Positions 2,088-64,000 of a stretch of DNA of 64,000 nucleotides are shown here, in pieces. The notes under the pieces are model-generated. The model saw only the letters and a list, made by a program, of their open reading frames with translations, had not been told where the DNA came from and ran no database searches. Within the stretch, counting starts at the first letter, position 1. Each line of letters starts with the position of its first letter. This DNA comes from Carpediemonas membranifera BICM (lineage: Eukaryota; Protista; Fornicata), in the NCBI GenBank assembly GCA_019828565.1, contig JAHDYR010000012.1, positions 434,001 to 498,000 of the forward strand, written 5' to 3'. The position numbers were made by a program, and so were the translations under genes.

Positions 2088-2409
2088 ATATGCGGGGCAA
2101 AGGGCTCGGGGAAAGTTTCGGCGCCGAGCAGTTGTGCCAACAAGCTCTGTGCAGGTTTGCCGCTGAGTGCCTGGGGTCGAGAGGGTGTCTGCGTGCACGA
2201 GAGTACATGGCGTCAGGGTATTCGGGGCTCACAATTCATCGCCAACACTCAACTCCGAGAGCGGGTGGTGACCCCAATGGAACTTGGAGATGGGGGTGGT
2301 GAACAGGCAAACTGTCCAAGCCGTCTGACATGGCCAAATCATTTCAATTACAGCTATTAATAATAACCACGGCATTTATTATTAATGTCCATGGCCTAAT
2401 AAAATAGCA

Positions 2410-14777: not shown

Positions 14778-14908
14778 TCATAAAGTATGTTAGTACCCGG
14801 CAGTCGGGTGGGTCGCATGGCATTTACGTGATTAACGTGAGCGACACGTTATTCGTCCTGGCCACGTTTGGTTTCAGCTATCACCAGCTCTCAAGCAGAC
14901 CTACAGCA

Positions 14909-47235: not shown

Positions 47236-48119
47236 TTTTAAAATCAAACTTAGTTTATCGCAGACCTTGGTCGACCTTATGTGCAAACAGAACGCTCCAT
47301 GATGTTTGAATGGGCCGTCATGATGTTCCATGAACTATCTAATATTGATAAGTATGCGGATAGACTGATGCCAGTCCGACCCCACATCTCCGACGAGGCA
47401 TGATTAGTCGCTGACTACCAGGCATCGTTGTTGCGTAATGACTGGACAAAGCTTTATCAAACGGGACCAATACCAGCATCCAGATGGAGGCTGGCCCATC
47501 ACGCAGCATGACCACTTCAAGCGCCAACAGTGAAGGCGAGCTAGTCGGTGTCGAAACCGGCCTATTCAAGCAAATCGATCAATCGATTCAGTCACTGCTC
47601 TTGTATTAGCAGTCATATCGGTGTCCTTAGGCCCTTCCTGCGCCACTCTCGTGGTTGAGGCATTGGTAGACTCCGCATTTTAAGGCTCAGTTTTGTGAAA
47701 ACCAGAATGGCGCGCCTCCGTCGCAGATACGTGGGATTGGGCTGTGAAACATGTTTGAATCGTTGAGTTATAATAATAATCGCTCAGTCATAATTACCAA
47801 AGGGTCCCTAGCTCACGTCAGACGAGCTGACGAGTCGGCAGACTCTGTCTTAACCATCCGGGGGGGTGAACATTTTACTGTGATCTTCTGTAGCACTATG
47901 TAAACAGGAAATTGTTCCGCCGGGCCCTTACTGGGACCCAGACTCACTCCCCTCGAAAGGGGAGGATTGGCAGCCAGGCTGCATTGCGACTTATTTCGCT
48001 TCTCCTTCGTTCTCTGGGTTCCTGATTTGATCTGGTCCTGATTTGGCCTCAATCTGATGCGAATCAGAATGCCTCGACCGCTCAGCCGAAGATTGACCAC
48101 TACGCTGGCCTTGCCAGCG

Positions 48120-48192
48120 GCTCCTTTAGCTCAGTTGGTAGAGCGTGTGATTAGTAATCACAAGGTCCTCGGTTCGAATCCGGGAGGGAGCA
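48120..48192 (+). tRNA. tRNA-Thr (anticodon AGT)
   Basis: Acceptor stem GCTCCTT/AGGGAGC, D arm TAGCTCAGTTGGTAGAGC, anticodon arm TGTGA-TTAGTAA-TCACA, T loop GGTTCGAATCC, discriminator A. Confidence 0.97.
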
Positions 48193-48195
48193 AAC

Positions 48196-48199
48196 TTTT
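48196..48199 (+). terminator. Pol III T4 terminator for tRNA-Thr
   Basis: TTTT 3 nt after the tRNA discriminator. Confidence 0.6.
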
Positions 48200-48223
48200 A
48201 TGTAATCAACGACAAACTGTCTA

Positions 48224-48271
48224 GCGAGCGGCGAGGCGCAGCCGAGCTTCGCGAGCCTGAGCGCAGCGAAG
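48224..48271. repeat. Invariant 48-nt 3'-terminal motif of the non-LTR elements (subfamily A copy)
   Basis: gcgagcggcgaggcgcagccgagcttcgcgagcctgagcgcagcgaag; identical at 57428-57475 and 60880-60927, and split at 50276-50306 / 54004-54022. Confidence 0.92.
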
Positions 48272-49939
48272 CAGTTTGAGGCTATGGGGTGCGTCGGGGT
48301 CCTCCGTCGCTCCATCCAGTGAGTCGCTGGCGAGTCAACAAAACCAACAAGAACACTCTGAAGCGCTCTGCACGAGCCGATTGCTACACCAATATCAGAA
48401 TTGAGTAACAATTAGTGGGAGAGGCCCAAATCCTCTGCTGCAGCATGTGCTGCGTCGCATTGCTTGATGAACGCTGCATATGTGTGCACTTGCCCTCTCA
48501 TGCATGCCAAGAAAGCGTTATCAGCCATCTCGCGGACCTGCTCAGCCTTAAGACCAAGTTCATCGCGCAAATCGTCCGTCCAGCCCCTTCCGTGCACTCT
48601 TCCAACGTCACCGTTGTGAAGCGTCACCGCGGGTATGAGCTTGACGTCCCAGTTGGAGTACTGGGCGCGCTTGCTCGTCATGGCCTGAGACACGTGGTTG
48701 CTGACGACGTTGTCAATGACGATTGCCTTCACGCCAGGTTTCGTGAGGAGGATGTCCGCCCGCGCCTTCATAGGCTTGGTCCGGTCAATGGTCCACTCAC
48801 TGGCCTTGTTCAACCACACCTCGGACTGGACTCTCCAGCCATAACCCTTCAGGTCTCTCACCAGCCCGTCCTTGATAGCGTTGTGACGCTCGTCGTCCAG
48901 GCCTCCACGGAGGCATGGGCAGCACAGGGTGTGAGTAGCGTTGCACACAACGGACTGGTGGTTCACGGTGCGTGCCCTGCAGAGAGGGCAGACGTCAAAT
49001 CCGGGCGTGAATGCGGGGAGGCCCAGGTGATTGCGGAAGATGGGGGCAACAGCGGCATCGGTTACCGAGCGCCCAAGAGAGGTCGGGTCGACCATCATGA
49101 ACGACCGAACGACGTTGGGCGAGACGGCGGCACTCACAGAGAGCTTGGTGGCAATAGATTCCTCAACGAGGCGAACCAAGTTCTTCTGCGTGTGGTCGGC
49201 GTCAAGAGCCTTCACATCGTCCAAGCCACTAGGCCAGTTCGACGGCGTGTTGAGCTGGGGCGGGAGACACTTGATGGCACCCGTCACGCTGTCAGGTGAG
49301 CGTGTAACACCCAGCCCTGCCAGTTGTCTCGTGGCCGCGAGGAACGCGGGAGCCCACACGACTGATGGCATTGCCAGCGCAAGCCCGCGTCTTTCGACCG
49401 GCATACTCAGGCGGAGAGCAAAGTCGTCATCGACCTCAGCCTCGCTCGACAGGATTCGGAGGATGGCCGGGACCGCCTCTTTCTTCTCAAATCCGAGCTC
49501 AGCCTCGTAGAGACCGTTGCCGACTCCACCCGTTGCGGGGGGGAACGTTACGGAAGAAGTGCTCCCACTTTGTGAGCGCACAATACTTCGCAATGATCAA
49601 CGCAGGGGCAGTTGCCTCCGGCCCCTCCTTGGCCACCATCTCTCCGGCAGCGTTAAGGAGTTGCATCACGCGACTGTTGACCTTGGCCAACTCACCCATC
49701 GCATGAGCAGCGGACCCAACCGGAACGCCCACGAGGTTTAGGCTGCGTCTTCTTGGGACGCCTCCCGAGGTGTTGCCGTCGGTAACGTCTCTGTGCGCCA
49801 CAACGCACTTCGACTTGTTGAGCCGCAGGCCGACTTCGAGGAACTTCTCCCTCGCGATCTCGACAAGGTTGTTAGCCTCTCGGCCGACACCGGGCGTCTG
49901 CAAAGGCCGATCAGTCGTGGCGACAAGATCGTCTTGGTA

Positions 49940-50233
49940 CCTTCAGGGCTTTCACGGTAAAGCGTACGATGTGTTTGTTCTGGACGTCGCGCATGAGCTC
50001 GACAACCGCAGTTTCAGAGCACAATGTGTTGAACACCGTGTCCGTATCACACCACAGTCTGTCAATTAGGCTTATGTCGACGAACTTCGCGTAGGTGCTA
50101 TGAACTTCGGTAAGAAGAGCACGAACATCCTCGGCGAAGACGCTTTCGCGCCATACGAGTCTCGTACGTCGTCGAGTCACCATCTGGCCTCCAGGATCAG
50201 CCTGGGGCACAGAAAATGACGACATTTCCATTT
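49940..50233 (-). mobile_element. 5' fragment of subfamily B non-LTR element, fused to the subfamily A 3' half
   Basis: Sequence matches 57092-57385 and the equivalent part of the next copy. Confidence 0.9.
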
Positions 50234-50245
50234 CGGGAGGGAGCA
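50234..50245 (+). repeat. 12-bp copy of the tRNA-Thr 3' end (putative target-site duplication)
   Basis: CGGGAGGGAGCA, identical to 48181-48192. Confidence 0.9.
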
Positions 50246-50755
50246 TCGTTTATTGCCTTTTGGACGAACTGTATTGCGAGCGGCGAGGCGCAGCCGAGCT
50301 TCGCGATCCACAAAGTGTGGCTCTATAACAGAGAGCCCTCCTCTTAAATCCAACCAAAATGGGGGGGGGCGAGTATTTACTTCGGGTGGCTTCCCCGAGC
50401 TCTTATGACAGACCCGGGTAAATCCTCGTCTCGCGGTCCGGTCAGGTCCTAACGGCTCCGACACCTGCCGATGCGTTTCGAAGTGTGACCTAAAGTGCAC
50501 ATTGATCGGCGCGCGCAGGTGCCAGTGATGGTCCTGTGACAGGATCCACAAAGTGTGGCTCTATAACAGAGAGCCCTCCTCTTAAATCCAACCAAAATGG
50601 GACAATCCCGCAAGACGTCCCTGTGGGACTAAAGCTTTGGGCCGGCGAGTCTATCTCGCCTCGACCAGAGTTAAGAATTAATGATGAATCCAGGCCGGCG
50701 AGTCCGTCTCGCCTCGGCCGTTCCCCTCGAACGCGGATGTTTAATGGAGGGGTGG

Positions 50756-53431
50756 TTAAAAGTGGGGCCCGAGAAGGCTGAGGTTCATCCTCCTGGTGAG
50801 GTCCTCGTTTGTTCTGATGGCGTCAGCGACATAGCTGCGGAGGGAGGTGACGTCCTTCCATGTGCCCATTGAGAGGATCACCTCCAGCGGGACTCCTGAT
50901 AGAGCCATCTCCGACGCTGCCCCCTTACGGAAGCTGTGGAGACCCGTCCGTGGACCGAACAACGCCTTCACGACTCGTCGGAGGTGTGCGGCTGTGAGCG
51001 GTTTGTCTCTGCTCAGGCGCCCGTTGACTATGACTCGCCAGATGGGGGTGTCATCAGCCAGGTAGTGTGTGCCCTCGACCCAGCGTCTAAGTGCCAAGGC
51101 CGGGTTGAAGGCGGCTGATAGCCATACGTATGGTACGCGCTTCTTAACTCCCGTTAGGATGGTCTTGGTCCGCTGAATGTGTAGGAGAATGTCGCCGTTC
51201 TTGAGTAGCTCCAGGTCGGCCGGGCATAGGGAGAGTATCTCGATGCCTCTGGACACCGTCAGATAGGCGACTGCCCCAAAGAGACATGCCTGATATGACT
51301 CAAAGTCGTCACTCCGGCGCCCCAGTGCCTCGATCATCTCAGCCTTGGTGATGGCGCGCGAGCCGCCGGTAGTTCCCGCCGTGCTGGCGCCCTTAGCCGC
51401 CTGCTTAACGATGTACTTGGAGTTGGCGGGCGGATGCCAGTCTTTGAGGAACTCCTGTAGCTGAACAATCCAGTAGCCCTTCCTCGCCACGTTCGATGGC
51501 CCGCAGAAGGAGCCTTCGTCCTTGAGGAAGGCTACAAGCTGGTCTCGATCCGACAGGCTGCGATCGCGAGAGCCTTCGAACCTGGCCACCCAGCCGGCCA
51601 CCGTCCGAGCAGACGCGTGATTAAGGTGAATCACTCTGTCCGACCTGAGGACTCTGTGGAAAACGTCCTGAACGCCATCACATTGAACCGTAGGCGTCCT
51701 CTGTCCTGTAGGTGAAGTAGGTGGGCCAGATCTGAGCTCGAAGCCGGGACGGAGAGACGGAGTTTCCAGGACGTCCAACTCTTGAGGAGTCTCATCTCCG
51801 GCGCTTGAACCTCTGGGTAGAGGAGAAAGACTGCTGAGGTCCAAGACCTCGGGTGTCCAGTCTGAGTCTGAACTCTCGCTGTCGCTATCTTCTGGACTAT
51901 GGCTGCCATAGACGAATTGGGGGCCCAGAGGACGCGACATCCAAGCCTTACGTCTACGTCCGCTGAGACTGTCTGGACTGGACCCCACTCCGCGAGGACA
52001 GATTCCATGCTGGACTCCAGAGAGGAAGGGAGTCGTGAGAAGCCTCTGGACAGCCGATCTGCTGCCAGGTTGATGATGCCCGGAGTGTGTAGTCCACGGA
52101 GTGTCAGGTTCCGGTCCTCCGCCTCCTTCTGGATCTGGGCTAGAATGTGCAGGGCCTGAGGTGGAGCCTTCGTAGACCCCGCCTTGTTGAGCCAGGCCAG
52201 AGCTGATGTGTTGTCTGAGAAGATCGATAGCTCGCGTTGGGAACTCTGTCTGCCGATCAGACGGATGCCCTGTAGGATTCCCGCGAGCTCCTTCACGTTG
52301 ATAGATTCTGCTCTTAGTTCTGGAGTGAACGTGCCCGAGGCTGAGGTCCCATACTCGCCGTGCACGGCTGCTCCCCACTTGACTCCAGATGCGTCTGTCG
52401 ATACGACGAGGTCTAAGGAGGGGTGAGTGCCCCAAAGCGACTGAAGTTCTCTGATGTCTCGGACTGGGCGCTCTCTTAGCAGTAGCAGCCACTCTTGCAG
52501 TAGCTCCTTGGAGAGTGGGTCCTGTTGAAGGTGTCTCAGCCGGAGGAAAGCCCCGTGGGCGGTTGTAGCGAAGTAAGTCAGTCTCCCGAGGATCTTGGCC
52601 CAAGTCTCCTGATCGATGGTCTTGCCTGCCAGAGCCTGATGAATGTGAGAGGAGTAACGTTTGGCCTTGTCCGCCGGGAGGCGTATTGTAAAACTCGCGG
52701 AGTCTATCACGAGCCCCAGATAGACCAATGACTGAGTCGGTGCCCATTCTGACTTCTCCTCTGAGGTGAGGACACAGAGGTCGGCTAGAGTCCGCCTGAT
52801 GCGCGGCACCGCCCTCCTCAGGATTTCTCGGTCGCGGTGAAATAAGAGGAAGTCGTCGAGGTAGACAACGATGGTAAGACCCGTCCGAAGGGCTAGTATC
52901 TTGGCGAGTTGGTTGGTGATCGTCTGAAACACGAACGGCGATGCGCGCCAGCCGAAGCCTAGCACTCTGTACTGAAACGCTCGTCCGTCTGGAAGATAGA
53001 CTCCTAGCAGCTTGCGGTCCTCCTTCCGTACTGGTACTTGATGGTACCCGGACTTGAGGTCGAACTTGACCATCCAGTCGCCCCTCTGGAGAAGGGAGAG
53101 AGCTCTGCGCAGACCGTAGAGCCGGAAGGATGAGCGCTCTGCCGAGCAGTCGTTCAGTATCGTGAGGTTGTGAATGATCCTCTTCGACTCGCCCTTCGGC
53201 ACAGTAAACAGCGAGGCGGTGTGTCGCAGGGAAGAGGGATTCACTTGCTCTATGACGCCTGTCTCTATCAAGGAAGGAATCTGCTGGACAATGAATGGGT
53301 CGACTGTCGGCTGTTGCCTTGGTGCTGGTGGTTGACTTCTCAGACGGATCTCGACCCCGTATCGTAACCAGTTGATCACCCGTTGTGATGCTCCCAACCT
53401 CTGCCACTCCCTCCACGCCGCGTTCATGCAT
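50756..53431 (-). CDS. Tyrosine recombinase ORF, overlapping the RT ORF in another frame
   Basis: Catalytic residues R (VSRGIE), K (RTKT), HSFRKG, W (GTW) and Y (LRSY) in the C-terminal third. Frame is open from 53506; first ATG at 53431. Confidence 0.88.
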   Translation of the reverse strand: MHERGVEGVAEVGSITTGDQLVTIRGRDPSEKSTTSTKATADSRPIHCPADSFLDRDRRHRASESLFPATHRLAVYCAEGRVEEDHSQPHDTERLLGRALILPALRSAQSSLPSPEGRLDGQVRPQVRVPSSTSTEGGPQAARSLSSRRTSVSVQSARLRLARIAVRVSDDHQPTRQDTSPSDGSYHRCLPRRLPLISPRPRNPEEGGAAHQADSSRPLCPHLRGEVRMGTDSVIGLSGARDRLREFYNTPPGGQGQTLLLSHSSGSGRQDHRSGDLGQDPRETDLLRYNRPRGFPPAETPSTGPTLQGATARVAATAKRAPSPRHQRTSVALGHSPLLRPRRIDRRIWSQVGSSRARRVWDLSLGHVHSRTKSRIYQREGARGNPTGHPSDRQTEFPTRAIDLLRQHISSGLAQQGGVYEGSTSGPAHSSPDPEGGGGPEPDTPWTTHSGHHQPGSRSAVQRLLTTPFLSGVQHGICPRGVGSSPDSLSGRRRKAWMSRPLGPQFVYGSHSPEDSDSESSDSDWTPEVLDLSSLSPLPRGSSAGDETPQELDVLETPSLRPGFELRSGPPTSPTGQRTPTVQCDGVQDVFHRVLRSDRVIHLNHASARTVAGWVARFEGSRDRSLSDRDQLVAFLKDEGSFCGPSNVARKGYWIVQLQEFLKDWHPPANSKYIVKQAAKGASTAGTTGGSRAITKAEMIEALGRRSDDFESYQACLFGAVAYLTVSRGIEILSLCPADLELLKNGDILLHIQRTKTILTGVKKRVPYVWLSAAFNPALALRRWVEGTHYLADDTPIWRVIVNGRLSRDKPLTAAHLRRVVKALFGPRTGLHSFRKGAASEMALSGVPLEVILSMGTWKDVTSLRSYVADAIRTNEDLTRRMNLSLLGPHF
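51631..53427 (-). CDS. Reverse transcriptase - RNase H of the YR retrotransposon
   Basis: KFDLKSGYHQV, LGFGWRASP, YLDDFL; RNase H motifs TDAS..W, INVKEL, SDNTSA, NLAADRLSR. Confidence 0.93.
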   Translation of the reverse strand: MNAAWREWQRLGASQRVINWLRYGVEIRLRSQPPAPRQQPTVDPFIVQQIPSLIETGVIEQVNPSSLRHTASLFTVPKGESKRIIHNLTILNDCSAERSSFRLYGLRRALSLLQRGDWMVKFDLKSGYHQVPVRKEDRKLLGVYLPDGRAFQYRVLGFGWRASPFVFQTITNQLAKILALRTGLTIVVYLDDFLLFHRDREILRRAVPRIRRTLADLCVLTSEEKSEWAPTQSLVYLGLVIDSASFTIRLPADKAKRYSSHIHQALAGKTIDQETWAKILGRLTYFATTAHGAFLRLRHLQQDPLSKELLQEWLLLLRERPVRDIRELQSLWGTHPSLDLVVSTDASGVKWGAAVHGEYGTSASGTFTPELRAESINVKELAGILQGIRLIGRQSSQRELSIFSDNTSALAWLNKAGSTKAPPQALHILAQIQKEAEDRNLTLRGLHTPGIINLAADRLSRGFSRLPSSLESSMESVLAEWGPVQTVSADVDVRLGCRVLWAPNSSMAAIVQKIATARVQTQTGHPRSWTSAVFLLYPEVQAPEMRLLKSWTSWKLRLSVPASSSDLAHLLHLQDRGRLRFNVMAFRTFSTESSGRTE

Positions 53432-53441
53432 GGAAAGAGGG

Positions 53442-53924
53442 TTAGGTGTGGGCTCTCTTGCCGGAGGATCCTGTCTGAGTGCGACCTCGGTCCTGAGCGC
53501 GGCCACCGCGGCGAAAATTAGCGTCGCGCTTATCGCCCTTAGACTTGGCGCGGGCCGCCAGTTCCAGGACCTCGTCGCGATCAGGCACGCCCTTCGCCTT
53601 GCAATAGTTCTCGAACCGCTCTGCAGTAGCGTCAGTGTACACGTCCTTGATTAGAAGGTACTGGATTCTTGCAAAGAGAATGTTCCCGATCTCCTTCATC
53701 TTTGCGCCGTTCTCGATCCTATTCATGGTCTTGTATACGAATCTGGCCTCATCTTCGAGGCCGAACCTCTTTGGCATCTCCAGGAACAGTGGACGGCGAG
53801 CTGCTTCTGCTTGCTGCTCCAAAATTGCTTCCGATTGTATCTTAACCAAGCGCTCCAGCTTCTCGATACGCTTGTTAAGCTCATCGGGACTGTCTTGCGG
53901 CGGCAGGTCTTCGTTATCAGACAT
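53442..53924 (-). CDS. Gag-like ORF1 of the YR retrotransposon
   Basis: 160-aa ORF starting right after repeat A1, with a coiled coil and an RG-rich C-terminus. Assignment is by position. Confidence 0.7.
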   Translation of the reverse strand: MSDNEDLPPQDSPDELNKRIEKLERLVKIQSEAILEQQAEAARRPLFLEMPKRFGLEDEARFVYKTMNRIENGAKMKEIGNILFARIQYLLIKDVYTDATAERFENYCKAKGVPDRDEVLELAARAKSKGDKRDANFRRGGRAQDRGRTQTGSSGKRAHT

Positions 53925-54162
53925 CCTGCCGATGCGTTTCGAAGTGTGACCTAAAGTGCACATTGATCGGCGCGCGCAGGTGCCAGTGATGGTCCTGTGA
54001 CAGGAGCCTGAGCGCAGCGAAGACGTCACTCTAGTGGTCAGTATGTCGGGTTTGAGGCACTGCTCGCTCCGAAATCTCCCTTTCGACTCTCCACTCAGTC
54101 ACAACGAACGCGAACGCGAATAACGCGCAGATCACGCTCAAAGTACAGAAACAACATCAGTA

Positions 54163-56790
54163 TTAGTGGTTGAGGCCATTAGCCTCAGCTTGACGGTGCG
54201 CAGCATCCGCCTGGCGCATGAACGCATGGAACACATGAACTTGCTGCCGCATACAGGCCATCATGACCGCGTCGGCAATCTGCCCAACAGTTTCGGCATC
54301 AAGGCCCAAAACGTCGCGCATCTCATCGGTCCATCCTCTCCCATGCACAGCACCAACACCACCACTCTGGCGAACGACCACGGGAATAACCCGGACGTTC
54401 CAGTTGGCGTACTGCTCCTTCTTGCTCCGCATAGATGCAGACGCGTGATTGCTCACCACTACGTCAAGCACAACGGGTTCGGTATGGCCCGGTCTGGTCA
54501 AGAGGAGGTCCGCCCGCGCCTTGACCCGTTTGGTCCGGTCCACAGTCCACTCGCTGCCCCGTCCGAGCCAATGCTCAACTCTTACGCGCCAGGGGTGCCC
54601 GCGCAGCAGTTTGGCGAGCGTGTCGCGAATTTGGTCGTGCCGCTCCGATCCCAGCCCCTCCCTCAGGAAGGGACAGGTAAGAGAATGCTCGGCTGAGCAG
54701 GGGACAGACCGGTGGTTAACACTACGGGCCAGGCATAGCGGACAGACGTCGTGGCCTGTCTCAAAGGCAGGAAGGCCGACATGGTTGCGAAGCATCGGTG
54801 CAGCACCCTCGTCACAGGGGTTACGACCCATAGCGGCTGGATCAGCCGCGAGTAGAGACCTGATCACGTTTGGCGAGTCGACTGAAACAGTCAGTTGGCT
54901 GGAAATGTTATCCTGCAGGAGGCGTACCAACTTCTTCTGCGTGCTCTCGAGTGAGAGCTTTCTGACATCGCCATATGATGTCGGCCAATCCTTGGGCGTC
55001 GCGGCGAGAGCCGGGATGCATGGCAGTGCGTCTTGGATGAGAGCCTCGGGCCTTTCGACCTTCAGCTCTATGAGTTGTCGTGCGGCACCCAGATAGGCTG
55101 GGGCCCACACAACAGAGGGCATGGCCAATCCGAGCCCGCCTTGACTGACCGGCAGACAGAGCCTTGCGGCGAAGTCCTTGTCAGTCTCTGCGCTGGACTG
55201 GAGCAGCTTCAGGATGGCGGGGACCACCTTCTGCTGTTCGAAGTCCAGTTGCGACTCGAACATGTCACCCCCGCCCGGCGAAACATTGCGGAAGAAGTGC
55301 TCCCACTTGGTGAGGGCACACAGTTTCGTCACTAGGAGGGCAGGGGCGACGGCTTCCGCGCCAATGTCAGAGACCATCGATGCAGCAGCGTCAAGCAGCT
55401 CCATAACCTTGCGGTTAGCAGAGCCTAGCTCCCGCATGATGTGCGTGGCGGAGCCGATTGGAACACCAACCAGCTTGGTATCGCGTCTCCGTGGGACGCC
55501 ACCAGTTGTGTTGCCGTCAACGACATCCTTATGGGCTAGCACGCACTTGGCACGGTTGAGGCGGAGGCCAACCTCGTTGAACTTCTGAGCGGCGAGTTCT
55601 GTGAGATTGTTGGCCTCACGGCCGACCCCAGGCGACTGTAGCGGGCGGGTAGTGGTGGCTACAATGTCATCCTGGTAGGCACGGATGCACCACCCAGGGA
55701 AAGCCTCGCGCAAGACGTCCAGAATGGGCTTAACGCCTAAGCTGAAAAGAATTGGCGAGAGCGGGTCCCCTTGGTGAATGCCTTCAGCCGACCTCATGGT
55801 GATGCCGGAGGTAGAGAAAAGTAAGCCCCGTCGGTACATGGTCGACAGGTATGGGATGAGCGCCGGCATGTAGGCCGCCACCACCTTCATGGCGAAGGCC
55901 CTCGACAAGCATCCATAGGCGTTGGAAAGGTCGAGTGTGAGCACTGTACCGCCACTTCGGTAGACTGCACTCACCTCCTCTCCCAACCTCTCCAAGCCGC
56001 ACTTCTCACCTACTCCGAACTGGTCCTTCAGGGCACGATCGACGTCAACCAGCCGCTTACGGACGGACCAGGCGAGTGCCTTTGCCGCCACACGGCGAAT
56101 AGAGTCGCCGATCGCGACCCCTCGGACCTTCCCTTCACCTTTCGGCACAGGGACGAGAATGCAATGACTGAACACATCAGTGTAAGCTTCTCCGTTCAGG
56201 ATGTCCTGAACCAGCGGGAGCAGAGCCTGGACTAGTTCGCGCCTTGATGTCTTGTAGGCGATCTTCAGGTGAAGGAACGATAGCCCGGAGGGCCCCGGGG
56301 CCGCCTCAGACTTGAGTGTGTTGAGGATGGTCTTCAGAGTCTTAGAGGAAACTTCGACACACTGCAGGGGGTTCTCGGGGACGTCTCGCATGGGGACGTC
56401 GGGACAAAGCCCGTTGAACCCAACCTGGAGGTCCCGCAGTTGAGCGTCGATTTCAGTCGGTGTCAGGTCAGTCTCATTGGCTACCATGGACGTGGCGGCC
56501 TTCGAGACAAACCCGTGGCGAATCAGGTTCAGCGTCCGACGCCACTTGCTCGCGCTAGCGCGTCGTCCGCCTCGGTCCGACGGCGGTGCGTACAGCGTCT
56601 TGGGGTAGTCTACAACCTTAAGAGCCTCAGCCCGCTTGGCGTCGTCACCTGTCGCGTTGTTCACCTCCCTCAATCGTTCAATAAGGCCTCGTGTGAACTT
56701 CTCGCGCCCGCGCTTGGGCGGAGCGATCTTTCCGAGGAACAAGGCCTGACCCGGGGGAAGGAAGACATCGGGTCGATGAGCAGGGGTAGT
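54163..56790 (-). CDS. RT + CCHC + restriction-like endonuclease (copy 1); start unresolved
   Basis: APGPSG, KVRGVAIGD, QFGVG, LDLSNAY, GIHQGDPLSP, AYQDD, GGLGL, CPLC..H..C, RHD, RADL, LDVVVS, KKEQY. Confidence 0.9.
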   Translation of the reverse strand, partial: TTPAHRPDVFLPPGQALFLGKIAPPKRGREKFTRGLIERLREVNNATGDDAKRAEALKVVDYPKTLYAPPSDRGGRRASASKWRRTLNLIRHGFVSKAATSMVANETDLTPTEIDAQLRDLQVGFNGLCPDVPMRDVPENPLQCVEVSSKTLKTILNTLKSEAAPGPSGLSFLHLKIAYKTSRRELVQALLPLVQDILNGEAYTDVFSHCILVPVPKGEGKVRGVAIGDSIRRVAAKALAWSVRKRLVDVDRALKDQFGVGEKCGLERLGEEVSAVYRSGGTVLTLDLSNAYGCLSRAFAMKVVAAYMPALIPYLSTMYRRGLLFSTSGITMRSAEGIHQGDPLSPILFSLGVKPILDVLREAFPGWCIRAYQDDIVATTTRPLQSPGVGREANNLTELAAQKFNEVGLRLNRAKCVLAHKDVVDGNTTGGVPRRRDTKLVGVPIGSATHIMRELGSANRKVMELLDAAASMVSDIGAEAVAPALLVTKLCALTKWEHFFRNVSPGGGDMFESQLDFEQQKVVPAILKLLQSSAETDKDFAARLCLPVSQGGLGLAMPSVVWAPAYLGAARQLIELKVERPEALIQDALPCIPALAATPKDWPTSYGDVRKLSLESTQKKLVRLLQDNISSQLTVSVDSPNVIRSLLAADPAAMGRNPCDEGAAPMLRNHVGLPAFETGHDVCPLCLARSVNHRSVPCSAEHSLTCPFLREGLGSERHDQIRDTLAKLLRGHPWRVRVEHWLGRGSEWTVDRTKRVKARADLLLTRPGHTEPVVLDVVVSNHASASMRSKKEQYANWNVRVIPVVVRQSGGVGAVHGRGWTDEMRDVLGLDAETVGQIADAVMMACMRQQVHVFHAFMRQADAAHRQAEANGLNH

Positions 56791-56810
56791 GGGAGGTGCT
56801 GATGGCGGGG

Positions 56811-57383
56811 TTAGGGGAAACCAACCGCCGAAACGTGAGCTGCCGTGTCTGCCTGGACCTCTTCGTCAACAGGCTGCGATGACAGACCCTCGTCGTCCGT
56901 CGCGATCTCTACTGCAGAGGGAGGGACATTTGCAGCGGTCTCTGGACGCATAGCGTTGTCTCGTATCGTGCAGGCGATAATCGCAATGGACTTGGGGGCT
57001 GTGTTTGCAGAACGCAACGAAGTTGCCGTTGGCAGCGCCTGTGTGGTGATGCTGTGGGCCTTAAGGAGGTCCTTGAAGCTGTCAGCAATCGCCTTCAGGG
57101 CTTTCACGGTAAAGCGTACGATGTGTTTGTTCTGGACGTCGCGCATGAGCTCGACAACCGCAGTTTCAGAGCACAATGTGTTGAACACCGTGTCCGTATC
57201 ACACCACAGTCTGTCAATTAGGCTTATGTCGACGAACTTCGCGTAGGTGCTATGAACTTCGGTAAGAAGAGCACGAACATCCTCGGCGAAGACGCTTTCG
57301 CGCCATACGAGTCTCGTACGTCGTCGAGTCACCATCTGGCCTCCAGGATCAGCCTGGGGCACAGAAAATGACGACATTTCCAT
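56811..57383 (-). CDS. ORF1 or N-terminal part of the non-LTR protein (copy 1)
   Basis: About 190-aa ORF identical between copies; may be continuous with the RT frame. Confidence 0.7.
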   Translation of the reverse strand: MEMSSFSVPQADPGGQMVTRRRTRLVWRESVFAEDVRALLTEVHSTYAKFVDISLIDRLWCDTDTVFNTLCSETAVVELMRDVQNKHIVRFTVKALKAIADSFKDLLKAHSITTQALPTATSLRSANTAPKSIAIIACTIRDNAMRPETAANVPPSAVEIATDDEGLSSQPVDEEVQADTAAHVSAVGFP

Positions 57384-57385
57384 TT

Positions 57386-57397
57386 CGGGAGGGAGCA
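57386..57397 (+). repeat. 12-bp copy of the tRNA-Thr 3' end (putative target-site duplication)
   Basis: CGGGAGGGAGCA, identical to 48181-48192. Confidence 0.9.
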
Positions 57398-57427
57398 TCG
57401 TTTATTGCCTTTTGGACGAACTGTATT

Positions 57428-57475
57428 GCGAGCGGCGAGGCGCAGCCGAGCTTCGCGAGCCTGAGCGCAGCGAAG
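57428..57475. repeat. Invariant 48-nt motif (subfamily B copy 2)
   Basis: Identical to 48224-48271. Confidence 0.92.
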
Positions 57476-57615
57476 ACGTCACTCTAGTGGTCAGTATGTC
57501 GGGTTTGAGGCACTGCTCGCTCCGAAATCTCCCTTTCGACTCTCCACTCAGTCACAACGAACGCGAACGCGAATAACGCGCAGATCACGCTCAAAGTACA
57601 GAAACAACATCAGTA

Positions 57616-60321
57616 TTAGTGGTTGAGGCCATTAGCCTCAGCTTGACGGTGCGCAGCATCCGCCTGGCGCATGAACGCATGGAACACATGAACTTGCTGC
57701 CGCATACAGGCCATCATGACCGCGTCGGCAATCTGCCCAACAGTTTCGGCATCAAGGCCCAAAACGTCGCGCATCTCATCGGTCCATCCTCTCCCATGCA
57801 CAGCACCAACACCACCACTCTGGCGAACGACCACGGGAATAACCCGGACGTTCCAGTTGGCGTACTGCTCCTTCTTGCTCCGCATAGATGCAGACGCGTG
57901 ATTGCTCACCACTACGTCAAGCACAACGGGTTCGGTATGGCCCGGTCTGGTCAAGAGGAGGTCCGCCCGCGCCTTGACCCGTTTGGTCCGGTCCACAGTC
58001 CACTCGCTGCCCCGTCCGAGCCAATGCTCAACTCTTACGCGCCAGGGGTGCCCGCGCAGCAGTTTGGCGAGCGTGTCGCGAATTTGGTCGTGCCGCTCCG
58101 ATCCCAGCCCCTCCCTCAGGAAGGGACAGGTAAGAGAATGCTCGGCTGAGCAGGGGACAGACCGGTGGTTAACACTACGGGCCAGGCATAGCGGACAGAC
58201 GTCGTGGCCTGTCTCAAAGGCAGGAAGGCCGACATGGTTGCGAAGCATCGGTGCAGCACCCTCGTCACAGGGGTTACGACCCATAGCGGCTGGATCAGCC
58301 GCGAGTAGAGACCTGATCACGTTTGGCGAGTCGACTGAAACAGTCAGTTGGCTGGAAATGTTATCCTGCAGGAGGCGTACCAACTTCTTCTGCGTGCTCT
58401 CGAGTGAGAGCTTTCTGACATCGCCATATGATGTCGGCCAATCCTTGGGCGTCGCGGCGAGAGCCGGGATGCATGGCAGTGCGTCTTGGATGAGAGCCTC
58501 GGGCCTTTCGACCTTCAGCTCTATGAGTTGTCGTGCGGCACCCAGATAGGCTGGGGCCCACACAACAGAGGGCATGGCCAATCCGAGCCCGCCTTGACTG
58601 ACCGGCAGACAGAGCCTTGCGGCGAAGTCCTTGTCAGTCTCTGCGCTGGACTGGAGCAGCTTCAGGATGGCGGGGACCACCTTCTGCTGTTCGAAGTCCA
58701 GTTGCGACTCGAACATGTCACCCCCGCCCGGCGAAACATTGCGGAAGAAGTGCTCCCACTTGGTGAGGGCACACAGTTTCGTCACTAGGAGGGCAGGGGC
58801 GACGGCTTCCGCGCCAATGTCAGAGACCATCGATGCAGCAGCGTCAAGCAGCTCCATAACCTTGCGGTTAGCAGAGCCTAGCTCCCGCATGATGTGCGTG
58901 GCGGAGCCGATTGGAACACCAACCAGCTTGGTATCGCGTCTCCGTGGGACGCCACCAGTTGTGTTGCCGTCAACGACATCCTTATGGGCTAGCACGCACT
59001 TGGCACGGTTGAGGCGGAGGCCAACCTCGTTGAACTTCTGAGCGGCGAGTTCTGTGAGATTGTTGGCCTCACGGCCGACCCCAGGCGACTGTAGCGGGCG
59101 GGTAGTGGTGGCTACAATGTCATCCTGGTAGGCACGGATGCACCACCCAGGGAAAGCCTCGCGCAAGACGTCCAGAATGGGCTTAACGCCTAAGCTGAAA
59201 AGAATTGGCGAGAGCGGGTCCCCTTGGTGAATGCCTTCAGCCGACCTCATGGTGATGCCGGAGGTAGAGAAAAGTAAGCCCCGTCGGTACATGGTCGACA
59301 GGTATGGGATGAGCGCCGGCATGTAGGCCGCCACCACCTTCATGGCGAAGGCCCTCGACAAGCATCCATAGGCGTTGGAAAGGTCGAGTGTGAGCACTGT
59401 ACCGCCACTTCGGTAGACTGCACTCACCTCCTCTCCCAACCTCTCCAAGCCGCACTTCTCACCTACTCCGAACTGGTCCTTCAGGGCACGATCGACGTCA
59501 ACCAGCCGCTTACGGACGGACCAGGCGAGTGCCTTTGCCGCCACACGGCGAATAGAGTCGCCGATCGCGACCCCTCGGACCTTCCCTTCACCTTTCGGCA
59601 CAGGGACGAGAATGCAATGACTGAACACATCAGTGTAAGCTTCTCCGTTCAGGATGTCCTGAACCAGCGGGAGCAGAGCCTGGACTAGTTCGCGCCTTGA
59701 TGTCTTGTAGGCGATCTTCAGGTGAAGGAACGATAGCCCGGAGGGCCCCGGGGCCGCCTCAGACTTGAGTGTGTTGAGGATGGTCTTCAGAGTCTTAGAG
59801 GAAACTTCGACACACTGCAGGGGGTTCTCGGGGACGTCTCGCATGGGGACGTCGGGACAAAGCCCGTTGAACCCAACCTGGAGGTCCCGCAGTTGAGCGT
59901 CGATTTCAGTCGGTGTCAGGTCAGTCTCATTGGCTACCATGGACGTGGCGGCCTTCGAGACAAACCCGTGGCGAATCAGGTTCAGCGTCCGACGCCACTT
60001 GCTCGCGCTAGCGCGTCGTCCGCCTCGGTCCGACGGCGGTGCGTACAGCGTCTTGGGGTAGTCTACAACCTTAAGAGCCTCAGCCCGCTTGGCGTCGTCA
60101 CCTGTCGCGTTGTTCACCTCCCTCAATCGTTCAATAAGGCCTCGTGTGAACTTCTCGCGCCCGCGCTTGGGCGGAGCGATCTTTCCGAGGAACAAGGCCT
60201 GACCCGGGGAAGGAAGACATCGGGTCGATGAGCAGGGGTAGTGGGAGGTGCTGATGGCGGGGTTAGGGGAAACCAACCGCCGAAACGTGAGCTGCCGTGT
60301 CTGCCTGGACCTCTTCGTCAA
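57616..60321 (-). CDS. RT + CCHC + restriction-like endonuclease (copy 2); start unresolved
   Basis: 901-codon open frame with the same motifs as copy 1. Confidence 0.9.
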   Translation of the reverse strand: MTKRSRQTRQLTFRRLVSPNPAISTSHYPCSSTRCLPSPGQALFLGKIAPPKRGREKFTRGLIERLREVNNATGDDAKRAEALKVVDYPKTLYAPPSDRGGRRASASKWRRTLNLIRHGFVSKAATSMVANETDLTPTEIDAQLRDLQVGFNGLCPDVPMRDVPENPLQCVEVSSKTLKTILNTLKSEAAPGPSGLSFLHLKIAYKTSRRELVQALLPLVQDILNGEAYTDVFSHCILVPVPKGEGKVRGVAIGDSIRRVAAKALAWSVRKRLVDVDRALKDQFGVGEKCGLERLGEEVSAVYRSGGTVLTLDLSNAYGCLSRAFAMKVVAAYMPALIPYLSTMYRRGLLFSTSGITMRSAEGIHQGDPLSPILFSLGVKPILDVLREAFPGWCIRAYQDDIVATTTRPLQSPGVGREANNLTELAAQKFNEVGLRLNRAKCVLAHKDVVDGNTTGGVPRRRDTKLVGVPIGSATHIMRELGSANRKVMELLDAAASMVSDIGAEAVAPALLVTKLCALTKWEHFFRNVSPGGGDMFESQLDFEQQKVVPAILKLLQSSAETDKDFAARLCLPVSQGGLGLAMPSVVWAPAYLGAARQLIELKVERPEALIQDALPCIPALAATPKDWPTSYGDVRKLSLESTQKKLVRLLQDNISSQLTVSVDSPNVIRSLLAADPAAMGRNPCDEGAAPMLRNHVGLPAFETGHDVCPLCLARSVNHRSVPCSAEHSLTCPFLREGLGSERHDQIRDTLAKLLRGHPWRVRVEHWLGRGSEWTVDRTKRVKARADLLLTRPGHTEPVVLDVVVSNHASASMRSKKEQYANWNVRVIPVVVRQSGGVGAVHGRGWTDEMRDVLGLDAETVGQIADAVMMACMRQQVHVFHAFMRQADAAHRQAEANGLNH

Positions 60322-60835
60322 CAGGCTGCGATGACAGACCCTCGTCGTCCGTCGCGATCTCTACTGCAGAGGGAGGGACATTTGCAGCGGTCTCTGGACG
60401 CATAGCGTTGTCTCGTATCGTGCAGGCGATAATCGCAATGGACTTGGGGGCTGTGTTTGCAGAACGCAACGAAGTTGCCGTTGGCAGCGCCTGTGTGGTG
60501 ATGCTGTGGGCCTTAAGGAGGTCCTTGAAGCTGTCAGCAATCGCCTTCAGGGCTTTCACGGTAAAGCGTACGATGTGTTTGTTCTGGACGTCGCGCATGA
60601 GCTCGACAACCGCAGTTTCAGAGCACAATGTGTTGAACACCGTGTCCGTATCACACCACAGTCTGTCAATTAGGCTTATGTCGACGAACTTCGCGTAGGT
60701 GCTATGAACTTCGGTAAGAAGAGCACGAACATCCTCGGCGAAGACGCTTTCGCGCCATACGAGTCTCGTACGTCGTCGAGTCACCATCTGGCCTCCAGGA
60801 TCAGCCTGGGGCACAGAAAATGACGACATTTCCAT
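60263..60835 (-). CDS. ORF1 or N-terminal part of the non-LTR protein (copy 2)
   Basis: Identical to the copy 1 ORF1. Confidence 0.7.
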   Translation of the reverse strand: MEMSSFSVPQADPGGQMVTRRRTRLVWRESVFAEDVRALLTEVHSTYAKFVDISLIDRLWCDTDTVFNTLCSETAVVELMRDVQNKHIVRFTVKALKAIADSFKDLLKAHSITTQALPTATSLRSANTAPKSIAIIACTIRDNAMRPETAANVPPSAVEIATDDEGLSSQPVDEEVQADTAAHVSAVGFP

Positions 60836-60837
60836 TT

Positions 60838-60849
60838 CGGGAGGGAGCA
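60838..60849 (+). repeat. 12-bp copy of the tRNA-Thr 3' end (putative target-site duplication)
   Basis: CGGGAGGGAGCA, identical to 48181-48192. Confidence 0.9.
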
Positions 60850-63800
60850 TCGTTTATTGCCTTTTGGACGAACTGTATTGCGAGCGGCGAGGCGCAGCCG
60901 AGCTTCGCGAGCCTGAGCGCAGCGAAGACGTCACTCTAGTGGTCAGTATGTCGGGTTTGAGGCACTGCTCGCTCCGAAATCTCCCTTTCGACTCTCCACT
61001 CAGTCACAACGAACGCGAACGCGAATAACGCGCAGATCACGCTCAAAGTACAGAAACAACATCAGTATTAGTGGTTGAGGCCATTAGCCTCAGCTTGACG
61101 GTGCGCAGCATCCGCCTGGCGCATGAACGCATGGAACACATGAACTTGCTGCCGCATACAGGCCATCATGACCGCGTCGGCAATCTGCCCAACAGTTTCG
61201 GCATCAAGGCCCAAAACGTCGCGCATCTCATCGGTCCATCCTCTCCCATGCACAGCACCAACACCACCACTCTGGCGAACGACCACGGGAATAACCCGGA
61301 CGTTCCAGTTGGCGTACTGCTCCTTCTTGCTCCGCATAGATGCAGACGCGTGATTGCTCACCACTACGTCAAGCACAACGGGTTCGGTATGGCCCGGTCT
61401 GGTCAAGAGGAGGTCCGCCCGCGCCTTGACCCGTTTGGTCCGGTCCACAGTCCACTCGCTGCCCCGTCCGAGCCAATGCTCAACTCTTACGCGCCAGGGG
61501 TGCCCGCGCAGCAGTTTGGCGAGCGTGTCGCGAATTTGGTCGTGCCGCTCCGATCCCAGCCCCTCCCTCAGGAAGGGACAGGTAAGAGAATGCTCGGCTG
61601 AGCAGGGGGACAGACCGGTGGTTAACACTACGGGCCAGGCATAGCGGACAGACGTCGTGGCCTGTCTCCAAAGGCAGGAAGGCCGACATGGTTGCGAAGC
61701 ATCGGTGCAGCACCCTCGTCACAGGGGTTACGACCCATAGCGGCTGGATCAGCCGCGAGTAGAGACCTGATCACGTTTGGCGAGTCGACTGAAACAGTCA
61801 GTTGGCTGGAAATGTTATCCTGCAGGAGGCGTACCAACTTCTTCTGCGTGCTCTCGAGTGAGAGCTTTCTGACATCGCCATATGATGTCGGCCAATCCTT
61901 GGGCGTCGCGGCGAGAGCCGGGATGCATGGCAGTGCGTCTTGGATGAGAGCCTCGGGCCTTTCGACCTTCAGCTCTATGAGTTGTCGTGCGGCACCCAGA
62001 TAGGCTGGGGCCCACACAACAGAGGGCATGGCCAATCCGAGCCCGCCTTTGACTGACCGGCAGACAGAGCCTTGCGGCGAAGTCCTTGTCAGTCTCTGCG
62101 CTGGACTGGAGCAGCTTCAGGATGGCGGGGACCACCTTCTGCTGTTCGAAGTCCAGTTGCGACTCGAACATGTCACCCCCGCCCGGCGAAACATTGCGGA
62201 AGAAGTGCTCCCCACTTGGTGAGGGCACACAGTTTCGTCACTAGGAGGGCAGGGGCGACGGCTTCCGCGCCAATGTCAGAGACCATCGATGCAGCAGCGT
62301 CAAGCAGCTCCATAACCTTGCGGTTAGCAGAGCCTAGCTCCCGCATGATGTGCGTGGCGGAGCCGATTGGAACACCAACCAGCTTGGTATCGCGTCTCCG
62401 TGGGACGCCACCAGTTGTGTTGCCGTCAACGACATCCTTATGGGCTAGCACGCACTTGGCACGGTTGAGGCGGAGGCCAACCTCGTTGAACTTCTGAGCG
62501 GCGAGTTCTGTGAGATTGTTGGCCTCACGGCCGACCCCAGGCGACTGTAGCGGGCGGGTAGTGGTGGCTACGATGTCATCCTGGTAGGCACGGATGCACC
62601 ACCCAGGGAAAGCCTCGCGCAAGACGTCCAGAATGGGCTTAACGCCTAAGCTGAAAAAGAATTGGCGAGAGCGGGTCCCCCTTGGTGAATGCCTTCAGCC
62701 GACCTCATGGTGATGCCGGAGGTAGAGAAAAGTAAGCCCCGTCGGTACATGGTCGACAGGTATGGGATGAGCGCCGGCATGTAGGCCGCCACCACCTTCA
62801 TGGCGAAGGCCCTCGACAAGCATCCATAGGCGTTGGAAAGGTCGAGTGTGAGCACTGTACCGCCACTTCGGTAGACTGCACTCACCTCCTCTCCCAACCT
62901 CTCCAAGCCGCACTTCTCACCTACTCCGAACTGGTCCTTCAGGGCACGATCGACGTCAACCAGCCGCTTACGGACGGACCAGGCGAGTGCCTTTGCCGCC
63001 ACACGGCGAATAGAGTCGCCGATCGCGACCCCTCGGACCTTCCCTTCACCTTTCGGCACAGGGACGAGAATGCAATGACTGAACACATCAGTGTAAGCTT
63101 CTCCGTTCAGGATGTCCTGAACCAGCGGGAGCAGAGCCTGGACTAGTTCGCGCCTTGATGTCTTGTAGGCGATCTTCAGGTGAAGGAACGATAGCCCGGA
63201 GGGCCCCGGGGCCGCCTCAGACTTGAGTGTGTTGAGGATGGTCTTCAGAGTCTTAGAGGAAACTTCGACACACTGCAGGGGGTTCTCGGGGACGTCTCGC
63301 ATGGGGACGTCGGGACAAAGCCCGTTGAACCCAACCTGGAGGTCCCGCAGTTGAGCGTCGATTTCAGTCGGTGTCAGGTCAGTCTCATTGGCTACCATGG
63401 ACGTGGCGGCCTTCGAGACAAAACCCGTGGCGAATCAGGTTCAGCGTCCGACGCCACTTGCTCGCGCTAGCGCGTCGTCCACCTCGGTCCGACGGCGGTG
63501 CGTACAGCGTCTTGGGGTAGTCTACAACCTTAAGAGCCTCAGCCCGCTTGGCGTCGTCACCTGTCGCGTTGTTCACCTCCCTCAATCGTTCAATAAGGCC
63601 TCGTGTGAACTTCTCGCGCCCGCGCTTGGGCGGAGCGATCTTTCCGAGGAACAAGGCCTGACCCGGGGAAGGAAGACATCGGGTCGATGAGCAGGGGTAG
63701 TGGGAGGTGCTGATGGCGGGGTTAGGGGGAAACCAACCGCCGAAACGTGAGCTGCCGTGTCTGCCTGGACCTCTTCGTCAACAGGCTGCGATGACAGACC

Positions 63801-64000
63801 CTCGTCGTCCGTCGCGATCTCTACTGCAGAGGGAGGGACATTTGCAGCGGTCTCTGGACGCATAGCGTTGTCTCGTATCGTGCAGGCGATAATCGCAATG
63901 GACTTGGGGGCTGTGTTTGCAGAACGCAACGAAGTTGCCGTTGGCAGCGCCTGTGTGGTGATGCTGTGGGCCTTAAGGAGGTCCTTGAAGCTGTCAGCAA
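60850..64000 (-). mobile_element. Subfamily B RLE non-LTR retrotransposon, copy 3; 5' end outside the window, many 1-nt homopolymer insertions
   Basis: Near-identical to copies 1-2, with the frame broken at several homopolymers. Confidence 0.93.
60880..60927. repeat. Invariant 48-nt motif (subfamily B copy 3)
   Basis: Identical to 48224-48271. Confidence 0.92.

Follow-up and report, generated by a model that had tools for sequence, protein, structure and literature searches.

The stretch of DNA analysed here comprises 64,000 nucleotides (nt) of the Carpediemonas membranifera BICM genome (contig JAHDYR010000012.1, positions 434,001 to 498,000 of the forward strand) and is referred to as the window. 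Within it lies a tRNA-Thr(AGT) gene, called by both ARAGORN and Rfam and the sole tRNA that ARAGORN calls in the window. At the base following its 3′ end begins a tandem array of retrotransposon copies belonging to two subfamilies, A and B, and the relationship between this array and the tRNA gene is the subject of the present work. The features of the array are as follows.

48120..48192, plus strand: tRNA-Thr(AGT), intact, proposed insertion target (ARAGORN; Rfam RF00005, 69.3 bits); four further loci hold identical copies, each of them occupied
48193..50233, minus strand: copy 1, tRNA-proximal, an internally deleted hybrid (blastn mapping, junction listing)
50234..50245, no strand: 12-bp target-site duplication between copies 1 and 2 (12-mer search, junction listing)
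50246..50309, minus strand: 3′-terminal 64 nt of copy 2 (subfamily A), severed by the insertion of element Y (blastn mapping)
54004..57385, minus strand: positions 60-3440 of copy 2 (subfamily A), with ORF1 and ORF2 open (blastn mapping)
57386..57397, no strand: 12-bp target-site duplication between copies 2 and 3 (12-mer search, junction listing)
57398..60837, minus strand: copy 3, full-length subfamily A, 3,440 nt plus the 12-mer (direct repeats, blastn mapping)
60838..60849, no strand: 12-bp target-site duplication between copies 3 and 4 (12-mer search, junction listing)
60850..64000, minus strand: copy 4 (subfamily A), running past the window end (blastn mapping)

The array is punctuated by one 12-nt sequence (12-mer), CGGGAGGGAGCA, which occurs exactly at 48181, 50234, 57386 and 60838 in the window, against a chance expectation of 0.01. 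The first of these occurrences, at 48181-48192, is the final 12 nt of tRNA-Thr and terminates at the discriminator base, A73. The repeat units in the window measure 3,452-3,461 nt and are mutually 99.7-100% identical by direct-repeat analysis and blastn. Since their long open reading frames (ORFs) lie on the minus strand, the array runs head-to-tail and antisense to tRNA-Thr. An earlier reading made from the sequence alone (the sequence-only reading) had described such an antisense array, abutting the tRNA and with an exact 12-mer at each junction, and the ARAGORN and Rfam calls and the 12-mer search bear this out. It had also drawn a simple alternation of tRNA, 12-mer and element; the 12-mer junctions of that layout stand, but the first unit is an A/B hybrid and the second is split by another element. 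Copy 1, of 2.04 kb, consists of the 3′ 1,748 nt of subfamily B fused to ~294 nt from the 5′ end of subfamily A. Its terminus, read on the tRNA strand, is AACTTTTATG, in which a T-run begins 3 nt past A73. Copy 2 (50246-57385) is a normal A copy, with open frames for ORF1 (56811-57383) and ORF2 (54163-56742), interrupted by a 3.7-kb tyrosine-recombinase element, Y, that is described below. Copy 4 ends at 64298 in stitched coordinates, and its ORF2 frame is broken by small indels. The array extends well past the window end, with 15 12-mers across 62.8 kb (G000:C1:482181-544934).

On the minus strand, each unit presents the 12-mer, ORF1 (~190 amino acids, aa), ORF2 (~860 aa) and a 3′ untranslated region (UTR) of ~220 nt without poly(A), in this order. 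At about 3.45 kb, the units agree with the compact size of about 3.4 kb that had been estimated earlier. Both subfamilies have this length, A being represented by the window unit 57398-60849 and B by the exemplar G000:C54:900061-903509, and the two share ~67% identity at the DNA level, 62% over ORF2 and 55% over ORF1. The coding and 3′-UTR features of the units in the window are the following.

60263..60835, minus strand: ORF1 of copy 3, 190 aa counted from the conserved ATGGAA, without a recognisable domain (ORF scan, Pfam)
57616..60321, minus strand: ORF2 open frame of copy 3 (ORF scan, alignment)
58942..59598, minus strand: reverse-transcriptase (RT) domain of ORF2 (Pfam RVT_1, E 1.6e-13; fold match to R2 proteins)
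57874..58197, minus strand: predicted CCHC zinc knuckle and restriction-like endonuclease core of ORF2 (invariant residues; fold match to R2)
57415..57475, also 48211-48271 and 60867-60927, minus strand: 61-nt 3′-UTR motif, candidate RT-binding site (repeat family D13)

The copy 3 ORF2 is conserved from about 60192 onward and overlaps ORF1's end in a different frame. In an alignment of ORF2 with 15 relatives (20-37% identity), residues C666, C669, H685, C689, E722, D744, D759 and K773 (858-aa numbering) are invariant in the 16 sequences, and this CCHC set followed by the E/D/D/K set reads as the signature of a zinc knuckle plus a restriction-like endonuclease (RLE). An AlphaFold model of ORF2, built on the alignment of relatives, reached a predicted local distance difference test (pLDDT) score of 85. 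Its best matches in the PDB are R2 proteins over the whole length (E 4e-24, template modelling (TM) score 0.60-0.64), which rank above LINE-1 ORF2p and, further down, group II intron RTs. An endonuclease of the apurinic/apyrimidinic (APE) type was not detected, as Pfam gave no Exo_endo_phos match in the element proteins. The junction catalogue, in turn, describes fixed 3′ ends, variable or truncated 5′ ends, no terminal repeats and a constant 12-bp duplication. These elements, with an RT, a CCHC motif plus a C-terminal RLE and no APE domain, are RLE-type (R2/CRE/R4/NeSL kind) retrotransposons without long terminal repeats (non-LTR). This RLE architecture had been proposed from the sequence, and the Pfam RVT_1 match, the invariant CCHC/RLE residues and the R2 fold match confirm it.

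Other parts of the element are less informative. With the threshold relaxed to E 5, Pfam still matched no zinc-finger/Myb head, or any other domain, in ORF1 or the N-terminal 240 aa of ORF2, and no N-terminal cluster of Cys and His residues is visible in the element protein sequence. ORF1 has no domain by Pfam and no similarity to the N-termini of relatives with fused ORFs; its AlphaFold model, with a pLDDT of 40, is unusable. The shared motif that had been noticed beside each 12-mer was found again and measures 61 nt. It begins 29-30 nt from the start of the 12-mer, is 95% identical between A and B and contains the 48-nt core at unit positions 31-78. A and B are too similar in this motif for covariation to be informative. 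An Rfam scan of the unit for RNA families or ribozymes detected the tRNA alone. Copies of the family are 99.5-100% identical, several of them have open frames of at least 900 aa, and the family appears, from its sequences, to have been recently active in Carpediemonas membranifera.

The genome-wide survey covered the 24.2 Mb assembly in 69 contigs; labels such as C1 and C68 denote contigs of this assembly, G000. It holds five identical tRNA-Thr(AGT) genes and two tRNA-Thr(CGT) genes at 89% identity. A search for the 22-nt 3′ end of tRNA-Thr, allowing up to 3 mismatches, returned exactly seven sites in the genome, and all of them (7/7) are occupied by the element. At the five AGT and two CGT genes alike, the element 3′ terminus starts, antisense, at the base right after A73, and it is of B type at six genes and of A type at one. 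The CGT genes differ by two substitutions within these last 22 nt, yet the element sits at the same nucleotide there. Upstream of the tRNAs, the seven loci have five unrelated 5′ flanks, and two pairs share only 129 nt and 43 nt, respectively. The 129-nt shared flank belongs to the AGT loci on C1 (window 47989-48119) and C39 (L017 1369-1500) and the 43-nt one to the two CGT loci (L022 versus L023 1458-1500), with abrupt divergence beyond in both cases. Such abrupt ends could reflect either mobilisation of the tRNA together with its array or the breakpoint of a duplication. By contrast with the seven tRNA-Thr genes, none of 12 other tRNA loci carries an A or B copy (0/12; five Phe, six Ala(AGC) and one Lys, with the neighbouring Glu, Val, Ala(CGC) and Gly genes included). 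CGGGAGGGAGCA itself occurs 65 times in the genome, versus 5 for the reversed control, and nearly all occurrences lie one unit apart within arrays.

The origin of the 12-mer can be judged from variation among junctions. The tRNA-Thr(CGT) genes end in a variant 12-mer, CGGAAGGGAGCA, and in the C68 array, which lies behind a CGT gene, the inner junctions at 14889, 15125 and 22555 carry the CGGAAGGGAGCA of that gene. Moreover, 5′-truncated copies keep the 12-mer on their 5′ side, as in B 1-134 (C19), A 1-224 (C68) and B 1-703 (C1), and, according to the junction catalogue, the boundary of the 12-mer is constant while the element 5′ ends vary by 0-2 nt. Because the C68 junctions bear the CGT variant, truncated copies keep the 12-mer and its boundary is fixed, these data support a 12-mer that is a target-site duplication copied from the local tRNA-Thr gene rather than a fixed sequence of the element. 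Internal junctions contain 12 nt of the tRNA each and never a whole tRNA. The proposal that the 12-mer is a target-site duplication left by site-specific insertion that spares the tRNA thus gains support from the CGT variant, the truncated copies and the seven occupied loci. Separately, the 12-mer was considered as coding sequence and this was rejected: an overlapping ATG arises only beside A-type termini, whereas relatives conserve the ATGGAA just within the element as the start.

Copies of A and B are interspersed within arrays with hybrid, internally deleted and truncated ones, and each copy is bounded by 12-mers, so that the junctions represent separate insertion events. An indication of where these events occur comes from a second element, Z, which inside arrays lies 26-36 nt past a 12-mer in 5/5 cases and nowhere else in ~216 kb; four of the five array copies that it interrupts (4/5) are now internal to their arrays. 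As Z normally sits just downstream of a tRNA and most of the interrupted copies are internal, later insertions must have been placed between them and the tRNA. Arrays would then appear to grow at their tRNA-proximal end, if the Z and Y families home just downstream of tRNA genes. Block duplication also occurs within arrays, since a 402-nt block bounded by 12-mers is present thrice on C6 (1115179/1115581, 1136106/1136508 and 1154408/1154810).

Taken together, it is very likely that these elements form a site-specific RLE retrotransposon family that uses the 3′ boundary of tRNA-Thr, with a 12-bp duplication. By analogy with the target-primed reverse transcription of R2, ORF2 would nick the tRNA-sense strand directly 3′ of A73, and the freed 3′-OH would prime the synthesis of cDNA on the element RNA, starting at its 3′ end, which would leave the element antisense to the tRNA. 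The second strand would be cut 12 nt upstream, in the acceptor/T-arm region, and repair would duplicate the final 12 nt of the tRNA. As an outcome, the tRNA gene would be complete and the second copy of the 12-mer would mark the 5′ side of the new insertion. Repeated insertion at the restored site would displace older copies outward and so produce a head-to-tail array with a 12-mer at each junction. The T-run of the element terminus would fall at the normal position of an RNA polymerase III (Pol III) terminator, and all tRNA-Thr(AGT/CGT) genes could thus be occupied without loss of function. In this scheme, we infer the order and position of the nicks, and the protein or RNA part that recognises the target, from the R2 analogy.

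Several observations weigh against targeted insertion or complicate it. No unoccupied tRNA-Thr site exists in the assembly, where all seven 3′-end sites are taken, so the empty alleles that the sequence-only reading suggested looking for were not found and a before/after comparison is impossible. Likewise, no array ends cleanly in a 12-mer followed by unique, non-element flank, as every far end examined is broken by other transposons. Once element termini are excluded, what is left of the far-end patterns is stray single matches, B termini that vary in a homopolymer, and the single site C68:29456, where a third element-type terminus is followed by another transposon. Other readable far ends, on C24 (stitched, reverse complement (rc) 28700) and C54 (stitched, 16830), are interrupted by transposons whose termini are of the CATACTGT or CATGCTGT type. 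The expectation that every array abuts a tRNA-Thr at the same nucleotide holds for all seven genes but not for some array fragments, which have no tRNA in the sequence examined (C1:50-56 kb, C54:898-907 kb, C61 and an inverted C19 block). The 3′-UTR RNA folds no better than shuffled sequence (z -0.4 to +1.6). Finally, two arrays mix canonical and variant 12-mers: C68:11444-29456, where the outer junctions 26008 and 29456 are the exceptions to the CGT-type inner ones, and the fragment C1:53862-56419, which has no tRNA nearby. Pure local duplication does not predict such mixed arrays, and an extra process is therefore needed, with inter-array (ectopic) recombination or misassembly as the simplest options and 12-mers carried on the RNA as another.

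Among the alternatives, the one that survives best takes the tRNA as cargo: transcripts of the outermost element on the tRNA side would read through the antisense tRNA into part of its flank and be retrotransposed elsewhere (3′ transduction), spreading tRNA-Thr genes and arrays together. It would account for the flank beyond the tRNA 5′ end being common to the C39 and C1 loci for exactly 129 nt, and to the CGT loci for exactly 43 nt. It would also fit the finding that every tRNA-Thr(AGT/CGT) gene is linked to an array and, likewise, all tRNA-Ala(AGC) genes to a sister element (see below). Nevertheless, we regard it as unlikely, since whole tRNA genes are absent from internal junctions, the CGT-variant 12-mer and the 12-mers beside truncated copies require a local target duplication at each event, three AGT loci have wholly unrelated 5′ flanks, and neither poly(A) nor a second duplication is visible at the boundary of the shared flanks. 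At most, 3′ transduction of tRNA genes would be an additional process and not a replacement for targeted insertion.

A somewhat less probable alternative is a single ancient insertion, either one per locus or one in total, followed by tandem amplification at the DNA level, through unequal crossing-over or segmental duplication, of a unit in which the 12-mer is included by chance. Higher-order repeats within arrays, such as the 402-nt block on C6, speak for such amplification, as does the near identity of the copies, and the mixed 12-mer types imply some recombination between arrays. However, amplification does not explain how seven tRNA loci with different flanks share one junction nucleotide, or why subfamilies that are 62% identical in ORF2 are interleaved with truncated and hybrid copies that are all bounded by 12-mers. 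In addition, the 12-mer tracks the local tRNA variant, and the positions of Z indicate growth at the tRNA end. The remaining alternative, that reverse transcription is primed by CCA-less pre-tRNA-Thr RNA instead of nicked DNA, is highly improbable: although the 12-mer terminates at the discriminator, the position at which RNase Z cleaves, such priming would be expected to leave whole or variable tRNA copies where a constant 12 nt is observed, the 12-mer matches the adjacent CGT gene and not the more numerous AGT genes, and ORF2 carries a complete set of endonuclease motifs. The idea of such a primer, raised by the sequence-only reading, therefore found no support.

Targeted insertion at the tRNA-Thr boundary would bear on the expression of the gene. 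Natural tRNA trailers in this genome consist of 1-2 nt followed by TTTT. After A73, the B terminus offers AAC and then TTTT, and the A terminus TTT at +4 and TTTT at +13. An AATAAA is located 3 nt from the A terminus. Since an element occupies every tRNA-Thr(AGT/CGT) gene, the functional copies have to be occupied ones. Judging from these termini, tRNA-Thr would continue to be expressed, with transcription terminating in the T-run supplied by the element.

Among known systems, R2 offers the closest structural parallel. The ORF2 model matches R2 over its whole length (8gh6, 9nl3, 9dou), and both have the order RT, linker, CCHC and C-terminal RLE. They also share strict specificity for a multicopy RNA gene, junctions without poly(A) and the occurrence of 5′-truncated and internally deleted copies. 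Sequence similarity to R2 is, by contrast, marginal (phmmer E 0.02). R2 has a zinc-finger/Myb N-terminal region, whereas none was detected here and ORF1 is separate, and R2 targets the inside of 28S rDNA, whereas this family targets the end of a tRNA gene that is not inactivated. Most R2 elements make small target deletions (PMC3636483), in contrast to the 12-bp duplication found here. The CRE clade (CRE1/CRE2, SLACS and CZAR) likewise consists of protist RLE elements that target a small multicopy RNA gene and generate target-site duplications, but its targets are spliced-leader genes, while this family uses the tRNA-Thr boundary and spares the gene, and Rfam detects only tRNA near the elements. 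All known CRE and R4 elements make target-site duplications (PMC3636483), a habit by which the CRE label would fit better than NeSL, as a fit and not as proof. The nearest ESM Atlas cluster of ORF2 is mostly from Euglenozoa, which is a weak hint. The database relatives of ORF2, from word-indexed, exhaustive HMMER, cluster and Atlas searches, are metagenomic or protist proteins.

RLE elements specific for tRNA genes have been described before, namely NeSL-1_TV (tRNA-Pro, Trichomonas), LIN15_SM (tRNA-Arg) and LIN25_SM (tRNA-Glu) (Kojima and Jurka 2015, PMC4640811). Like the present family, these are of RLE type and use one tRNA species each, and the host of NeSL-1_TV is also a metamonad. The LIN15_SM junctions, however, lie inside the body of tRNA-Arg, so that the gene is split (S6 Fig, PMC4640811), and all described NeSL elements cause target deletions (PMC3636483). 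This family instead makes a duplication and lies antisense at the boundary after A73 of an intact gene, and NeSL-type N-terminal domains were not detected in it. The TRE5 and TRE3 elements of Dictyostelium and Ty3 of yeast find safe havens at the tRNA genes of compact genomes (PMC5391098, PMC5633606). Guided by contacts with transcription factors, these elements insert some distance away from tRNA genes of any kind, with an APE endonuclease or an integrase, unlike the family described here, which uses one nucleotide of one tRNA species. The GilM, GilT and Genie elements of Giardia are reportedly metamonad RLE elements in tandem head-to-tail arrays, and are said to be telomere-associated or to reside in a repeat of 771 bp rather than beside tRNA genes.

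Beyond this genome, the nearest relatives, at 37-40% identity, are L048 (GCA_002919055.1 PPCM01001310.1) and L049 (Logan SRR31444219 contig), which have one fused ORF of 1,100-1,141 aa. Their junction reads GCAATAAA[A/G]ACGA, then CACCG and then the ATGGAA ORF start, and they may use a different target. On seven contigs with relatives (L048, L049 and L059-L063; 25-40% identity), neither a tRNA nor any other Rfam family was found. The L048 contig also bears an RT-Dam element and a Ty3-like element. A search of the literature, which was not exhaustive, found no description of such retrotransposons in Carpediemonas. The earlier statement that no CRE-like family was known to target a tRNA 3′ end holds for the geometry at the gene end, which appears undescribed, but tRNA-specific RLE elements are already published (PMC4640811). 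The targeting of tRNA genes by RLE elements is thus already known, and novelty does not lie in tRNA targeting itself. What appears to be undescribed is precise targeting of a gene end that preserves the gene, the saturation of isoacceptor families and a mirrored lineage at tRNA-Ala.

This last lineage is a related set of RT-RLE elements at tRNA-Ala(AGC) genes, where, in sense orientation, the element 3′ terminus (...GATGATTAAA) abuts nt +1 in 6/6 genes. It is 26-34% identical to the Thr element and has the same CCHC and RLE motifs. The downstream flanks of these genes diverge 6 nt past the tRNA 3′ end, and coordinates on C8 and C68 suggest that the lineage also forms tandem units ~4.0 kb apart. 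The loci are the following.

tRNA-Ala(AGC) loci L041-L046, sister RLE at the 5′ end: C63:891308, minus; C48:64465, minus; C26:99552, minus; C8:223792, plus; C6:11625, plus; C4:14768, plus

At distances of 1.2-6 kb from other tRNAs there are additional RT lineages with 35-48% identity to P0010, some in sense and some in antisense orientation. By coordinates only, and with partial lists of RT matches and tRNAs, the nearest tRNA is on the element 3′ side in 44/45 RT matches within ~60 kb of a listed tRNA, and eight RT loci that are neither Thr nor Ala lie less than 15 kb from a tRNA, where our own chance estimate is 1-2. The pairs with the tRNA on the element 3′ side include those below.

RT/tRNA pairs: C6:1776337/1779199; C44:87348/85841; C5:396872/395071; C5:357572/363811
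RT/tRNA pairs, continued: C56:43141/49606; C26:1133465/1140701; C1:65210/72071

In addition, one of the five tRNA-Phe(GAA) genes (L040, G000:C6:356866-356938, minus strand) has ~37 nt homologous to the B terminus directly after A73, a remnant that suggests a third terminus type. This type is also present after the last Thr 12-mer of the C68 array (C68:29456-29538).

Elements of other kinds are also found next to tRNA genes. The one that splits copy 2 in the window is the following.

50305..54008, minus strand: Y element, 3.7 kb, whose 916-aa ORF has a C-terminal tyrosine-recombinase domain (Pfam Phage_integrase, E 3.7e-6)

Y has split direct repeats of 59 and 84 nt (D15 and D16) and lies 64 nt from the 12-mer in the window. 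Elsewhere (L040, L043, L044 and L045), members of its family follow Phe, Ala and Gly tRNA genes at a distance of 37-50 nt, which gives 37-64 nt downstream of tRNA 3′ ends or 12-mers for all five places. Y is probably DIRS-like, with tRNA genes as its homing sites. Z begins with CTAGCT[AG]TCCTAGCC and has a direct repeat of ~300-315 nt; seven insertions, at the sites given here, are 22-36 nt downstream of either a tRNA 3′ end or a 12-mer within an array, and one more copy of the Z motif (L045 2604) is ~390 nt from the nearest tRNA.

Z sites: stitched C1:506645; C24 (two); L020; L034; L041; L042 (the last two 22-35 nt past tRNA-Ala genes)

A repeat of at least 100 nt, ending in ...GGAGCTGACGTCTC, was observed 2-4 nt upstream of nt +1 of tRNA-Phe, tRNA-Val (twice), tRNA-Gly and the C24 tRNA-Thr (loci L036, L037, L038, L045 and L018/L005). 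This repeat may belong to a further element docking at tRNA 5′ ends or represent an upstream module that these genes have in common.

RNA-templated gene insertion is currently modelled on R2 and other site-specific RLE retrotransposons, and, to our knowledge, every well-studied one of these disrupts its target. The family at tRNA-Thr would follow a non-destructive strategy, in which insertion occurs at the boundary, a 12-bp duplication rebuilds the 3′ end of the tRNA and a T-run is supplied, while two essential isoacceptor families are fully occupied. It also raises the question of how an ORF2 without an N-terminal head finds one nucleotide and yet tolerates the two substitutions of the CGT genes. 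The Thr and Ala lineages, together with those known at the level of coordinates, would make target specificity comparable across lineages within one small genome. Furthermore, at least five element families that are unrelated to one another dock at tRNA gene ends in this 24-Mb genome.

More tentatively, and with somewhat less than even confidence, these observations may be read as a radiation of RLE lineages, each fixed on the end of one tRNA family, that saturate isoacceptor families and live in mutual dependence with the genes they serve. If so, one lineage would occupy the Thr 3′ end in antisense and another the Ala(AGC) 5′ end in sense, and at least four further tRNA groups, as seen from coordinates, may be targeted. 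The elements would supply a Pol III terminator or an upstream context to the genes, and may have spread tRNA genes by 3′ transduction. As a corollary, an RT-endonuclease of ~860 aa without a zinc-finger/Myb head would recognise tRNA boundaries in a mode that is not seen in R2.

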